A stretch of 64,000 nucleotides of DNA, from assembly GCF_006345805.1 (NCBI RefSeq), contig NC_043002.1, forward strand, positions 92,938,001 to 93,002,000, read 5' to 3'. The first letter of the stretch is position 1. The number at the start of each line of letters is the position of its first letter. The notes under the pieces are model-generated. The model was not told where the DNA came from. It did not search any database and saw only the letters and a program-made list of their open reading frames with translations. Shown here one piece after another: positions 3,925 to 31,339 of the stretch. The position numbers were made by a program, and so were the translations under genes. This DNA is from Octopus sinensis. Lineage: Eukaryota.

Positions 3925-4211
3925 ATATATTGTTGTTTTTTTTTCTTCAATTTCTGCAATTTCAACCAATCACTGACGTCTATTGAGGTAAAAAAACATT
4001 CTGTGCCGTATGAATATGTCCCTCATTTAAGAAACAGGTTGGGTTTATTTACATTTGTGAAGAAAAAAAGATACCCTTCCTCCCACCCCTAACCCTAACC
4101 CTAACCCTAAAACAGATTGAAATGCAATAGATCGATACTAGGGTCATAATTATGGGTGACAATTTCATATGACACCGCTAGAAAAAACTGCCGTTCAAAC
4201 CGAAAAGATCC
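3925..4211. mobile_element. MITE family G, one end missing, with four CCCTAA repeats
   Basis: Ends in the TIR ...aactgccgttcaaaccgaaaagatcc; (CCCTAA)4 at 4087-4110. Confidence 0.85.
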
Positions 4212-4514
4212 AAGACATGAAATGAAGCTAAGCATATTGTCTGCGTCTTTTGACATGTCTTTACATATCGCATGACCTTTGTAAAGAATGGGCTTGTTTC
4301 AATGTCATTTGTTTCCACTTCATATACCTGTTCAGGCTGTTTGTTGTTCGACAGGGTGGAAGAATATTACCCCAATTGGGAACAGGGTGGGGGAGGAGGG
4401 GTTTGGTGACAGGAAGGGCATTCAACCATAGAAAAATACTGCTGGAACTAGAACATGCTCTCTTCTGAACCATGCAACCATGAAAAAATAGATGTTTTAA
4501 TAATAATAATAATA

Positions 4515-10137: not shown

Positions 10138-10323
10138 CCCTTTAGCATTCAGATTATTCTGTCAAATGTAAAACTTATTTATTCATATTGTTTTGAATTA
10201 ATCATGTATTGTCTTGTAGATTAAAGATTTACAGTGTAGAGTAAGAGGCTAGATATGGTAAGTTTGAACATAAAACAAGCAGAATATTTGGGGCCAGCTA
10301 TGGCCAGTTTAAATGCGAAAGAG
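10138..10323. mobile_element. piggyBac-type MITE family F, internally deleted
   Basis: TTAA TSD with eroded right TIR. Confidence 0.8.
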
Positions 10324-25114: not shown

Positions 25115-25820
25115 CTTTCATTGGAAGAAGAAAAAATATGATACATTTGATAAAAATAAACATTAAGAAAATTGTTCGATTAATAAGAGACATTTCTAGG
25201 GATTACTATTATTATTGATTTTTGAAAGTGATGACCAACATAACTAACTATAATATATTATTTTACTGTAGATTTTATTTTTTTTTATATGACATGACAT
25301 TTTGTGAACATAGGTGTTGTGGGTTATAGGTTTCTAACAAGCCAATCACTGCATCCTATGAGGTGAGAGTAACAGGAGACCAGCAGTGCAACTTGGGTGG
25401 AAGAAATATCACACAGGGCACTTTTGTATAAAAAAGTACTAGCTTAACAGTTTTTTCATCAATAACTATAAAAAAAAAAGTATACATATATATACACACA
25501 CACACTATATATATATATAGATATATATATCTATATATATAAAACTCAACTTGTGTGTCTGTGTGTTTAACTTCCCGGCACATCTCCTCCTAGCCAACAA
25601 ATCGTAGAACCACCAAAAATGGGTCACTTAAAGTATAGGCAAATGAAAACACACACACTTACATATATATGACGGGCTTCTTTCAGTTTCCGTCTACCAA
25701 ATCTACTCACAAGGCCCGAGGCTATAATAGAAGACAGTTGCCCGAGGTGCCACGCAGTGGGACTGAACCCGGAACCATGTGGTTCGTAAGCAAGCTACTT
25801 ACCACACAGCCACTCCTATG

Positions 25821-25859
<39 letters not shown>

Positions 25860-25908
25860 GGGGCAAATATATATATATATATATCTATATATATATATAT
25901 TATATTAT

Positions 25909-26090
25909 ATGGGGGGCAAAGGAAAGTGATTGCGTCACTCATAGCCTCTCCTCTCCAGGTGTAATGATCGCTGCAGAACTTCTACTTGGCTGCGCCTTGT
26001 GGAAAGTTCTTGCTAATGGCCTCTCCTGCACTACTGTGTCCACAGCAGCACCTTCACGCGGTACCCCATGTTCTCACTGAGCCTGCTGTG
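25909..26090 (+). ncRNA. Candidate HDV-like self-cleaving ribozyme at the LINE 5' end
   Basis: P1 ATGGGG (25909-14) with CCCCAT (26064-69); P2 CACAGCAG (26041-48) with CTGCTGTG (26083-90); P3 ACC/GGT; L3 TTCACGC; G26070 positioned for P1.1. J4/2 is non-canonical. Confidence 0.5.
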
Positions 26091-29000
26091 TGGCGCGACC
26101 GGGTGCTTGGCGGTATAACCAGGTGGGCAGACTGGGCTCGTTAGCCTTGGTTGGCAGCCAGTCTAGGAGAAGGAAAACTCTGACTCCAAACCCACGCTCC
26201 GCTGCCTTGCGGATGCTCTTGAGAGAGGGAAAGGCTATGGGAGTAAACCCAGACAGAAAATCCGGAGTGGAGCCCCGAAGGCGGTAGGGTGTCGAATCTC
26301 GACCCCTTTCCGGCAACTCCTGCAGCCAACCAGACTCCAAACGTACTGCACTGCATTCCTTTGGATTATGTCTGGGGGGCCGAGAGGGAGATTCTGGTGT
26401 CTGGGCAGCCCAGTGTCTTCGTTTCCACCACCCAGGCTTGCGCCATGGAGGAACTACTCCATCGATGGAACAAGCTGAGATGGCAGTTACGAGTTATAAG
26501 CCAGGGTGAATTGGCGTAATCCCGGGCGCTACGGGCCGTCTCTAACGGTGGGAGGGATCATTGAAGTCCCACTGGTCAGCTACCGCCCTCCTTAAAATGG
26601 GCAGCCCCCAGCCAATAATGGTGCTGACCCGCCACAGACTGCCCGCTTCAATGGGTGCTTGGAGCTAGGACAAAATCTGAAAAGCAGACTGAAAACCCTG
26701 CACCAGCAAACAAAGGAAAAACAAACACCCAGTCACCAGTCTTGCGACTGGCCACCTGAAATGTCAGGACCATGTGCCCTGGCATCATTGACGATCTACG
26801 ACAGATGAACGACAGTAGGAAGACAGCAGTCATCAACACCGAATTGAAAAGGCTGAACATCGACACAGCAGCGCTGCAAGAGACCAGGCTCGCCGCAGAC
26901 AGCATGCTACGGGAGAAGGACAACACCTTCTACTGGCAGGGGAGACCCGTCGAGGAGGCCCGCCAGCATGGCGTGGGGTTTGCCGTGAGGAACAGCTTGC
27001 TCCCCATGGTGATCCCTCCTTCAAATGGCTCAGAGCGCATCCTCACTCTTAACCTTGCAACATCAACGGGGAAGGCAACATAATTAGTGCTTATGCCCCA
27101 ACACTCCACTCTCCTCAGAAATAAAAGACCGGTTCTATGAGGAGCTCGACGCCACCATCAGCCAGATACCAGGGTCGGAGCCCATCTTCCTTCTGGGCGA
27201 CTTCAACGCAAGGGTGGGATCCGATCATCGGGCATGTCCAGATTGCCTTGGACGCTTTGGCGTGGGGAAGGTGAATGAGAATGGCCAGAGACTGTTGGAG
27301 CTTTGCTCTTACCGGAAACTCTGCGTTTCCAACACATTCTTCATGACTAAGCTGCATCACCAGGTCTCATGGAGGCACCCAAGGTCCGGAAACTGGCACC
27401 AACTGGACATGGTCATCACCCGGCAAGCCCACCTCGGCAGTGTGCTTCTCGCACGCAGCTACCATGGTGCTGAGATGGCAGATTATTCGCGACACCACTT
27501 GCAGAATAGCCATGTCATCCCTAGGAAAGAGGGAGCGGAGAAATCAAGACTGGTTTGAAGCTCACCTGCCTGAGATGGAGCCTGTCATTGCTGCCAAGAG
27601 GGAAGCACTGGTCAACTATAAGCGCGACCCATCAGAAAAGAACCTGGCTACTCTGAGAACAGCCAGAAGCGACGCCCAGAGGACGGCCAGAACGTTGCGC
27701 CAACATCTACTGGCAGAACTTATGCCAGAACATCCAGTGCTGTGCTGACAGTGGTAACGTGAAAGGGATGTACGAGGGGATGAAGAAAGCATTCGGGCCC
27801 ACTGTCAGAAAGGTTGCTCCACTGAAGTCCAGAGATGGCGAGGTCATCAAGGACCAAGCGAAGCAGATGGAGAGGTGGGTCGAGCATTACCAGAACCTCT
27901 ACTCCACTGAGAATGTGGTCACCAGGTCTGCCCTCGCTGGCATTCCTGCTCTGCCTGTCATGGAGGAGCTTGACCTGCCTCCAACAAAGGAAGAACTGAG
28001 CAAAGCAATTGACTCACTCGCTCGGGGCAAGGCACCAGGGCAAGACGGCATCCCCACAGAAGTCATCCAGTGCGGGAAGCCAGCCCTTCTGGGCCATCTC
28101 CACGAGCTGCTCTGTCAGTGCTGGGAGGAGGGCTCTGTCCCTAAGGATATGCGTGACGCAAACATCATCACACTGTATAAAAACAAAGGGGACAGAAGCA
28201 ACTGCAATAATTACAGGGGTATATCACTGCTCAGCACTGTCGGTAAGGCATTTGCCAGGGTGGTCCTGAAGAGGTTGCAAATACTTGCAGAGCGTGTGTA
28301 CCCCGAGTCTCAGTCTGGCTTTAGGGCAGAGAGGTCTACAATTGACATGATCTTCTCACTCAGGCAGCTTCAAGAAAAGAGTCAAGAACAGAGACAGCCC
28401 CTATACGTGGCCTTCATCGACCTGGCTAAGGCGTTCGACTCAGTCAGCAGGGAGGGGCTGTTTGCACTCCTGGGTAGGATAGGTTGCCCTCCCAGACTGC
28501 TGAAACTCATCACCTCCTTTCACGACGGTATGCAGGGAACAGTGCAGTTTGACGGATCGCCCTCGGAGTCATTCCCCATCCAGAGTGGAGTGAAGCAGAG
28601 TTGTGTTCTGGCGCCGACGCTCTTCGGAATTTTCTTCTCCCTTGTCCTGTCCTATGCCTTCAGAACGTCCGACGACGGAGTGTTCCTCCACACATGGGCT
28701 GATGGTGGATTGTTCAATCTTGCGTGCCTCAGAGCTAAGACCAAAGTCCGTCAGGTGCTGATCAGAGAGATCCTCTTTGCTGACGATGCCGCCCTAACAT
28801 CACAGAACCAACTGGGTCTCCAGAGGCTGGTCAGCTCCCTGGCGGATGCCTGCCAAGAGTTCGGCCTTACCATCAGCCTGAAAAAGACAGAGATCATGGG
28901 CCAGGACGTCGGAGGGGTCCCCAGCATCAGTGTCGGCGACCACAGCTTGCAGGTGGTGAACGAGTTCACTTACCTGGGATCGACGGTCCTCCAGCAGCCT

Positions 29001-29770
29001 GTCCCTCGAGCCGGAGCTGAACAGACGGATTGGGAGGGCTGCTGCTGCCATGGCTAAGCTCTCCAGGAGAGTGTGGGAAAACAACATGCTCACAATAACC
29101 ACCAAGATCGCAGTGTACCGAGCCTGCATGCTGAGCACCCTACTCTACGGCAGCGAGAGCTGGACAACATACACCCGGCAGGAATGCCGCCTCAGCGGCT
29201 TCCACATGCGGTGTCTTCGACGGATCCTTGGCATCTCCTGGAAGGACCGAGTACCAAACGGAGTCATCCTGGAGCAGACTAATATGCCAAGCATGTATGC
29301 CCTCCTCGTGCGGAGACGACTGCACTGGCTTGGACACGTCTGCCGCATGCAGGACGGTTGCATGCCTAAAGACATCCTGTACAGCGAACTCACCACGGGA
29401 TCCCAACCCAAGGGACGTCCACAGCTACGATACAGGGACGTGTGCAAGCGCGACCTGAGGACTGCCAACATCTGTGTGGACACGTGGGAGGAAACAGCTG
29501 CTGACCGCTCTGCCTGGCGTCGGACGGTGAGGAAAGGCGTTTCCATGGCTGAGGAGAGGAGAGCACAGCTGTGGTTGGACAGACGGGACAGGAGGAGGAC
29601 AACTGCAGCAACACCCCACACGTACCCATCGATGTTCTGTGCAGCAACTGTACCAAGGACTGCCACTCTAGAATTGGACTGTTCAGTCACAGCAGACGCT
29701 GCACATCATCAAAGTAGGCCCCACCCTTGGCGCAACCCATTGTCTATCAAGACAGACGGGGAGAAGAAGA
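25911..29770 (+). mobile_element. Near full-length RTE-clade (BovB-like) LINE, disrupted
   Basis: Has a 5' UTR, APE domain (LRLAT*NVRT, ALQETR, LGDFNARVG) and RT (QSGFR, AFIDLAKAFDSV, LFADD). C-terminal CSNCTKDCHSRIGLFSH finger and GAA tail. Disrupted by a stop at 26757-26759, several frameshifts and an internal deletion near 27474. Both flanks are (TA)n. Confidence 0.96.
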
Positions 29771-30555: not shown

Positions 30556-30788
30556 GTATTTCTTTATTACCCACAAGGGGCTAAACATAGAGGGGACAAA
30601 CAAGGACAGACATAGGTATTAAGTCGATTACATCAACCCCAGTGCGTAACTGGTACTTAATTAATCGACCCCGAAAGGATGAAAGGCAAAGTCAACCTCG
30701 GCAGAATTTGAACTCACAACGTAACGACAGGCGAAATACCGCTAAGCATTTCATCCGGCATGCTAACGTTTCTGCCAGCTCGCCGCCT
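30556..30788 (-). mobile_element. tRNA-derived SINE family C, young copy
   Basis: Head aaggcggcgagctggcagaaacg with B box gagttcaaattc. 13-bp TSD tctactctaatac (30543-55 and 30789-801). Confidence 0.9.
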
Positions 30789-31339
30789 TCTACTCTAATA
30801 CCATTACCACCCTACCTGGCTCTTGGGTACCTTTAGTGGAGTCTCTACTCAGTTATATTCTGATCTTCTGACAAATTCTCAAGTCAGAAGGAAACTTGGT
30901 TTCTTAATAGACTGCTACTTCTTGTTGCAGATATCAACAAATTATAGTTTCCATCCCACTTTCTCTTACTAATATTGGATTTCCTACAAAGATCATGATC
31001 AATACCCATCCTACCCTGAATAAATTATAACAGAAAGATGAAAACAAAAGAAAAAAGTGTTGTTAATGCTATTATAATTACACAATGTAACACGATTTTT
31101 GTCGTTGGGTAACAACTGTTATTTCCTATTTGCTTATCCTTAGAAAGTATGAAATATGGCTAATATTTCCTTCAAACTGCTTTTCTTACATTTATTCAAA
31201 CCCCAAAGAATCCCTCTCAACACATGGCTATGATGCTCCCTCACTACTGCCCATCATCAAAGATGCACATCGTGTCAGCCACTAAGAGACATGCTCAAGC
31301 GGTTATGGTTAAGCAACTGACAAGCAAATCTGTAGTACT

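Follow-up and report, generated by a model that had tools for sequence, protein, structure and literature searches.

The 5' terminus of an RTE-like retrotransposon

The window, by which we mean the whole 64-kb stretch of DNA that was analysed, contains on its forward strand a degenerate RTE-like non-LTR retrotransposon at positions 25909-29769. The element is G+C-rich and its surroundings are AT-rich eukaryotic DNA. It was recognised from its open reading frames, their translations and a Pfam match to RVT_1. The features of the element and of its flanks are as follows.

25823-25908, no strand: upstream (TA)n flank (TRF, which extends the repeat to 25910; period 2, 44.5 copies)
25856-25867, forward strand: second copy of the first 12 nt of the element, ATGGGGGGCAAA, within the upstream TA repeat
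25909-29769, forward strand: degenerate RTE-like non-LTR retrotransposon (ORFs, translations, Pfam RVT_1)
29740-29755, forward strand: conserved 3' hairpin UUGUCU-AUCA-AGACAG, with the same stem and different loops in the related elements L005 and L001
29770-29861, no strand: downstream (AT)n (TRF)

The element is about 3.9 kb long and consists of a 5' UTR of about 860 nt followed by the APE, the RT and a C-terminal domain. The APE region starts at about 26760, RVT_1 was detected at 7e-32 (Pfam) within the ORF at 27759-29057, and the C-terminal extension reaches about 29720. Translation of the frames revealed that the ORF of the window copy is broken by several frameshifts and in-frame stops. 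This copy is dead at the protein level, which is a question separate from that of ribozyme activity. When further copies of the element were sought in the 64-kb window, none was found besides 25909-29769.

Comparison with the protein database gave a best APE match of 73% identity, and the APE homologues carry the name craniofacial development protein 2, which we take to be an RTE-derived gene. The RT homologues, at 60-78% identity (best match 78%), come from fish, amphioxus, echinoderms and molluscs and bear the names jockey or BS. A peptide read from the 5' region found no match when used as a protein-database query. Two intact relatives, L005 and L008, each encode one 1048-aa ORF with Exo_endo_phos (APE) and RVT_1 as its only domains. 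The traits of the RTE clade are present, namely a length of about 3-4 kb, a single long APE-RT ORF, no RNase H, a short 3' UTR and a simple-repeat end. We call the element RTE-like, a clade assignment suggested indirectly by the name of its APE homologues and by its domain layout.

At the 3' end, equivalents of the hairpin were observed at 4450-4466 in L005 and at about 10188-10206 in the oyster copy L001, in each case directly before the tail and with a variable 4-nt loop. A hairpin of this kind before the tail is typical of the 3' recognition element of stringent LINEs, and the one seen here is probably the RT recognition element. The tails themselves vary: that of the window copy has GAA repeats followed by TA, the oyster copy ends in AAC repeats, and L005 has a GAC/AAC tail. 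The downstream (AT)n could be either flanking DNA or the element's own microsatellite tail. Outside the element, 25680-25810 and 30560-30800 resemble tRNA-derived SINE copies by eye; ARAGORN identified no tRNA in the window.

Layout of the candidate ribozyme

The first nucleotides of the element open a region, 25909-26090, in which the parts of an HDV-like ribozyme can be read in the following order.

25909-25914, forward strand: P1 5' strand AUGGGG, opposite 26064-26069 (6 Watson-Crick pairs)
25915-26040, forward strand: J1/2 peripheral domain of 126 nt, with hairpins at about 25920-25957, 25958-25972 and 25973-26013 (RNAalifold, MFE)
26041-26048, forward strand: P2 5' strand CACAGCAG, extendable to 26035-26049
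26050-26052, forward strand: P3 5' strand ACC, opposite GGU at 26060-26062
26053-26059, forward strand: L3 UUCACGC, which fits UYCHCGY; C26055 is the proposed P1.1 partner
26060-26062, forward strand: P3 3' strand GGU; the 3-bp P3 closes the 7-nt L3
26064-26069, forward strand: P1 3' strand CCCCAU, preceded by A26063, which is unpaired in the window
26070-26071, forward strand: GU after P1', invariant in the window, L005 and L006
26072-26076, forward strand: 5-nt linker UCUCA in place of P4, equal in length in L005 (UUUCA) and L006 (UACCA)
26077-26082, forward strand: J4/2 CUGAGC, with C26077 as the candidate catalytic cytosine
26083-26090, forward strand: P2 3' strand CUGCUGUG (DNA CTGCTGTG), 8 perfect pairs, extendable to 26082-26097

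An earlier note, made from the letters of this DNA, had claimed P1, P2, P3 and L3 in the order of a nested double pseudoknot. Both direct reading of the sequence and our own layout scanner recovered all four, in that order and at the coordinates given above. The order of the strands, P1, J1/2, P2, P3, L3, P3', P1', P1.1, (P4), J4/2 and P2', is that of the HDV-like ribozymes. The scanner imposes this strand order, requires the L3 pattern and was run on both strands of the window; it returned one full layout in the whole window on either strand, which is 25909-26090.

P1 in the window consists of 6 perfect pairs with an A-U pair at its base, as against the usual HDV-like P1 of about 7 bp without mismatches. 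A seventh position would set G25915 opposite A26063, and these do not pair. The predicted cleavage site lies at 25908/25909; in an alternative register, in which the G run only is used, the cut is predicted at 25910/25911. In both the RNAalifold consensus and the single-sequence MFE structure, P2 was lengthened by wobble pairs to about 14 bp, 26035-49 pairing with 26082-97, and P3 was formed too. One P1.1 pair, C26055-G26070, is possible from the positions of the two residues. We also considered a mini-P4, CUC/GAG (26073-75 with 26079-81), which would make C26082 the catalytic residue. This candidate was rejected as its pairing is not kept in L005 and L006, and it is also opposed by the conserved C26077 and by the conserved spacing.

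The 5' G run, 25911-25917, can also pair with conserved CCUCUCC tracts within J1/2, at 25950-25956 in the single-sequence fold or at 26019-26024 in the consensus fold. Both the MFE and the consensus folds favour this pairing over a G run left free for P1. The pairing could represent an inhibitory or regulatory alternative structure.

The mammalian CPEB3 ribozyme likewise forms just one P1.1 pair, leaves an A unpaired between P3' and P1', and has GU after P1'. Its L3 is UUCACGU and its P2 is CACAGCAG/CUGCUG. The L3 (UUCACGC) and P2 of the candidate in the window are closely similar to these, a likeness that serves as a lead only. The CPEB3 ribozyme differs from the candidate in having a P4 and almost no J1/2, and its place is an intron rather than the end of a retrotransposon. 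On the region around the candidate, the CPEB3 model of Rfam found no match. Neither did Rfam report an HDV match there, be it at the gathering score or, over 801 nt, at E<=10, and its output for the region was confined to microRNA-like noise from the TA repeat. Rfam missed the HDV-like ribozymes of L005 and L008 as well. Since canonical-looking relatives with a long J1/2 are also missed, the negative Rfam result for the window says little. J1/2 inserts of 100-280 nt are apparently too long for the Rfam models.

Homologous cores in related elements

Relatives L005 to L008 were obtained from a scan of metagenome contigs in which a conserved block of the 5' region served as the anchor. Scans with the core pattern gave no match in the bacterial and archaeal genome collection or in the viral contigs. 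Twelve encoding contigs were examined, and most were 5'-truncated or had another 5' region (L001-L004, L009-L015); L016 is the same locus as L008. The relatives that carry the layout fall into two subfamilies, A and B. Subfamily A comprises the window copy, L005 and L006, which have the 5' region of the window in common, and subfamily B comprises L008 and L004.

In L005, whose ORF is intact, the core reads CAUAGCAG-U-ACC-UUCCCGU-GGU-ACCCCCU-GU-UUUCA-CUAAG-GCUGCUAUG. The 5' strand of its P1, GGGGGGU, starts at L005:147, at the border between AT-rich DNA and the G+C-rich element. Its P1 has textbook form, with 7 pairs made up of a G•U wobble at the base, five G-C and a U-A. P2 is 9-10 bp long, P3 is the same as in the window, and J1/2 measures 280 nt.

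The window and L005 differ at 9 positions over the 50-nt core, and every helix survives these differences. Two of the nine make up a compensatory P2 pair (position 3), which is C-G in the window and U-A in both L005 and L006. One lies in P1' (A in the window, C in L005) and is matched by U25910 where L005 has G, such that P1 position 2 is U-A in the window and G-C in L005. Two fall at degenerate positions of L3, and the remainder in the linker or the junctions. The two sequences are 82% identical over the core, against 59% over J1/2. L3 is UUCCCGU in L005 and UUCCCGC in L006, and the residue opposite A26063 is a paired U in both. The cytosine at 26077 is invariant in the three members of the subfamily and is followed by N-R-A-G (UGAG, UAAG, AGAG); all three likewise have GU behind P1' and 5 nt standing in for P4. 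The earlier note had looked to covariation and to a conserved J4/2 cytosine as marks of such a ribozyme, and both were found, the former as the compensatory changes at P2 position 3 and P1 position 2.

The J1/2 insert is evidently structured, since six pairs of the hairpin at 25973-26013 are changed on both sides when the window, L005 and L006 are compared (RNAalifold). L006 itself carries one mismatch each in P1, P2 and P3, that in P1 being at the base. Its identity to L005 is 78% in the core and 91% in J1/2, which is the opposite of what strict purifying selection predicts. We read L006 as a decaying copy, and it weakens the argument for selection. The covariation in subfamily A is real but thin, given that it comes from three sequences.

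L008, which has an intact ORF, and L004 are separate insertions with different flanks. The ribozyme that they carry is unrelated to subfamily A in sequence and canonically HDV-like in form. Its P1 is GGGGUGU/ACACCCC, J1/2 is 99 nt long, P2 has 9 bp and P3 is GGC/GCC; L3 is UCCUAGC, GGG (for P1.1) follows P1', a P4 hairpin is present and J4/2 is CUAAAC. Homology between L008 and L004 begins at the first nucleotide of P1. The cores of A and B could not be aligned by MAFFT, and pairs were tabulated by coordinate, with no covariance model. When this small set of five sequences is compared in this way, P1, P2 and P3 differ in sequence between the subfamilies and the pairing is kept. Judged from these layouts, an HDV-like ribozyme stands at the very start of the element in two subfamilies of the lineage.

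The scanner found no HDV layout in the oyster copy L001, in the Biomphalaria-type L003, L012 and L015, or in L007 and L014. Some of these relatives are plainly 5'-truncated, and others may carry a different 5' module. The Biomphalaria-type sequences L003 (about 4165-4400), L012 (2540-2760) and L015 (about 2380) match the window from about 26125 on, downstream of the ribozyme, and their 5' ends begin with another module, GGGAGTGGTACTGGGGATAAGCTCCC... Taken together, these junctions suggest that the 5' modules of the lineage seem to be exchangeable. A block at about 26258-26400, with its core at 26345-26372 (AAATCCGGAGTGGAGCCCCG...CTCCTGCAGCC...CCAAACGTACTGCACTGCATTCCTTTGGA), is kept at the DNA level across diverged relatives, including oyster, Biomphalaria and several metagenome contigs. 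In the intact L005 and L008 it precedes the main ORF, and no long frame opens there with an ATG. The block may be a conserved element at the RNA or DNA level, or else a small ORF1 with a non-AUG start.

Proposed function of the module and possible role of the TA repeat

We propose, with a probability of about 0.8, that elements of this lineage encode an HDV-like self-cleaving ribozyme at their extreme 5' end and that 25909-26090 is the form it takes in the window copy. The earlier note's placing of an HDV-like module at the 5' end of a non-LTR retrotransposon is borne out by the homologous core in the intact L005 and by the second, canonical form in L008 and L004. The candidate, undetected by the Rfam models, would be an addition to the already known class of retrotransposon HDV-like ribozymes.

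In a read-through transcript begun in the DNA upstream, the G-rich 5' end of the element would pair with the C run just after P3 and form P1, and the long P2 would close the other pseudoknot. The active site would comprise L3, one P1.1 pair and the J4/2 cytosine, and the RNA is predicted to cut itself directly 5' of P1; we infer the cleavage, its site and the identity of the catalytic C from the layout. Such a cut would free a retrotransposon RNA with a defined 5' end, irrespective of the promoter. Subfamily A would achieve this with a build that has a 5-nt linker and no P4, together with a structured J1/2 insert of 126-280 nt.

The window copy is a fossil, with a broken ORF, a P1 of 6 and not 7 bp, and an A-U in place of the usual G•U or G-C as the cleavage-site pair. 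Apart from the shortfall in P1, the other elements of its core are intact. The short P1, the A-U at the cut site and the competing pairing of the G run would count against cleavage by this copy. The earlier note had suspected a dead ribozyme for another reason, the absence of P4 and an atypical J4/2. These features do not point that way, as the 5-nt linker and C-N-R-A-G are also present in the intact L005, and the active ribozymes of silkmoth R2 and that of abalone share this build (PMC3774820).

HDV-like ribozymes sit at the 5' ends of RTE, R4 and L1 elements, and the J1/2 of published examples ranges from 216 to >700 nt (PMC3774820). Their occurrence at the 5' termini of RTE-type elements was described by Ruminski et al. 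(2011), as cited in PMC3774820 and PMC4908430. As far as these citing accounts go, the module described here is like the RTE-type ribozymes in forming a nested double pseudoknot at the very 5' tip of an element that encodes APE and RT, in having its cleavage predicted at the first nucleotide of the element, and in its presumed release of a 5' end from read-through RNA. It differs from them, on the same accounts, in a subfamily A sequence that is new to the Rfam models, in a long structured J1/2 of 126-280 nt and in lacking P4. For the RTE-type ribozymes, the part of the literature cited here also holds that help in translation initiation is possible.

In the R2 ribozymes of the silkmoth Bombyx mori and other Bombycoidea, P4 is lacking and the J1/2 loops measure 216-498 nt; these RNAs self-cleave in vitro, and a C-to-U mutation abolishes cleavage (PMC3774820). 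In these ribozymes the stretch from P1.1 to P2' is little conserved save for the catalytic C and one A (PMC3774820). Our subfamily A resembles them in its missing P4, its very long J1/2 and its weakly conserved P1.1-to-P2' stretch. R2, however, belongs to another clade, encodes a restriction-like endonuclease and is specific for 28S rDNA. Its ribozymes take the 5' strand of P1 from the 28S target sequence (PMC3774820), which is 28S in every copy. Part of the R2 P1 can thus come from outside the element, whereas the P1 of L005 is element-encoded. In the ribozyme of the abalone Haliotis discus, 5 nt replace P4 (Webb and Luptak 2011, as cited in PMC3774820); going by this published description, the linker at 26072-26076 agrees with it in length. 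Structured J1/2 domains are known to activate large HDV-like ribozymes (PMC4908430). By analogy with these systems, every unusual feature of the window ribozyme has a published precedent.

If our reading is right, it adds to the retrotransposon HDV-like ribozymes a subfamily, without P4 and with a long structured J1/2, that the curated covariance models have missed. Scans based on Rfam would then under-count such ribozymes. It also makes L005 and L008 two intact reference elements for 5'-end processing of RTE-like elements in marine invertebrates.

A further proposal of the earlier note was that the (TA)n repeat completes P1 and thereby arms cleavage. The family would accordingly be specialised for (TA)n, the first two nucleotides of P1 (AU) would come from the flanking repeat, and insertion would arm self-cleavage. 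Several observations fit: the last two residues of P1' are AU, and the perfect 6-bp register depends on A25909 and U25910, which continue the TA repeat in phase; (TA)n is found on both flanks; the 12-nt copy of the terminus in the upstream repeat has the same AT; and AT also precedes the G run in L006. The principle, moreover, is established for R2 (PMC3774820). Set against this, a single copy, that of the window, cannot show target specificity or a family-wide CCCCAU. The five relatives whose 5' flank is visible (L005, L006, L008, L004 and L001) all lie outside (TA)n, and in the intact L005 all 7 pairs of P1 are encoded by the element. A cut 5' of A25909 would leave AU on the RNA, and therefore new copies would bring their own AT whatever the target. 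Lastly, one C-to-A change at 26068 would yield the same picture if a decayed copy adjoined TA. The proposal is unsupported by the relatives, and we consider it unlikely.

It may well be that the ancestral register was the G run against CCCCCU, as in L005, with the cut at 25910/25911, and that the AU pairing is accidental and arose after the C-to-A change at 26068. That the family is now a (TA)n-specific RTE lineage in the source genome, with P1' changed to CCCCAU and the cut placed two nucleotides inside the repeat, strikes us as improbable. Were it true, the AU on the RNA would let the end of the cDNA anneal to the repeat and give precise 5' junctions, much as in R2 elements that cut upstream in 28S rRNA, and the ribozyme would be the first to be tied to a microsatellite target. 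The concept of a P1 supplied by the target is not new, as it is documented for R2 and 28S (PMC3774820), and coupling to a microsatellite target would extend that case only modestly in concept.

Our preferred reading of 25909-26090 as an HDV-like ribozyme has also to be weighed against the view that the conserved 5' sequence is an internal promoter, a translation element or a protein-binding site, and that the HDV-like pairing is coincidental to its G-rich and C-rich blocks. Strongly conserved blocks do occur also in J1/2 and further downstream, three helix mismatches are tolerated in L006, and Rfam is without a match, all of which such a view would accommodate. It would leave to coincidence, on the other hand, the complete HDV-like layout at the first nucleotide of the element in two subfamilies of unrelated primary sequence. 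Among the changes between the window and L005 some are compensatory and none is disruptive, and nothing is missing from the L3 consensus, the G behind P1' or the J4/2 cytosine. We regard this explanation as very unlikely.

Chance was assessed by shuffling. A full layout with a P2 of at least 8 bp appeared in 3 of 200 dinucleotide shuffles of the whole window (1.5%), and chance alone readily supplies a 6-bp P1 somewhere in the 200 nt upstream. In local shuffles, the P3-L3-P1' block was kept fixed and the remaining 5' region was shuffled; a P1 no more than 3 nt from the element boundary together with a P2 of at least 8 bp was then obtained in only 6 of 5000, with the rare L3/P3 block already given. 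The weight of the finding rests on the position of P1 at the terminus of the element and on the length of P2. That a flexible descriptor has merely picked up a chance match is hardly credible, as L005 and L006 keep the same core and these homologous cores contradict it.

The 12-nt sequence ATGGGGGGCAAA in the upstream TA repeat is identical to the first 12 nt of the element (25909-25920), and lies 53 nt upstream of them. This upstream copy could serve as an alternative 5' strand of P1. L005 too has a second, internal copy of its 5'-terminal motif, with GGGGGGTGTTGTGAG at 147 and CGGGGTGTGAGG at 279. The duplicate possibly originated by template switching at the 5' end of the RNA during reverse transcription, or by a deletion within a tandem pair of elements.
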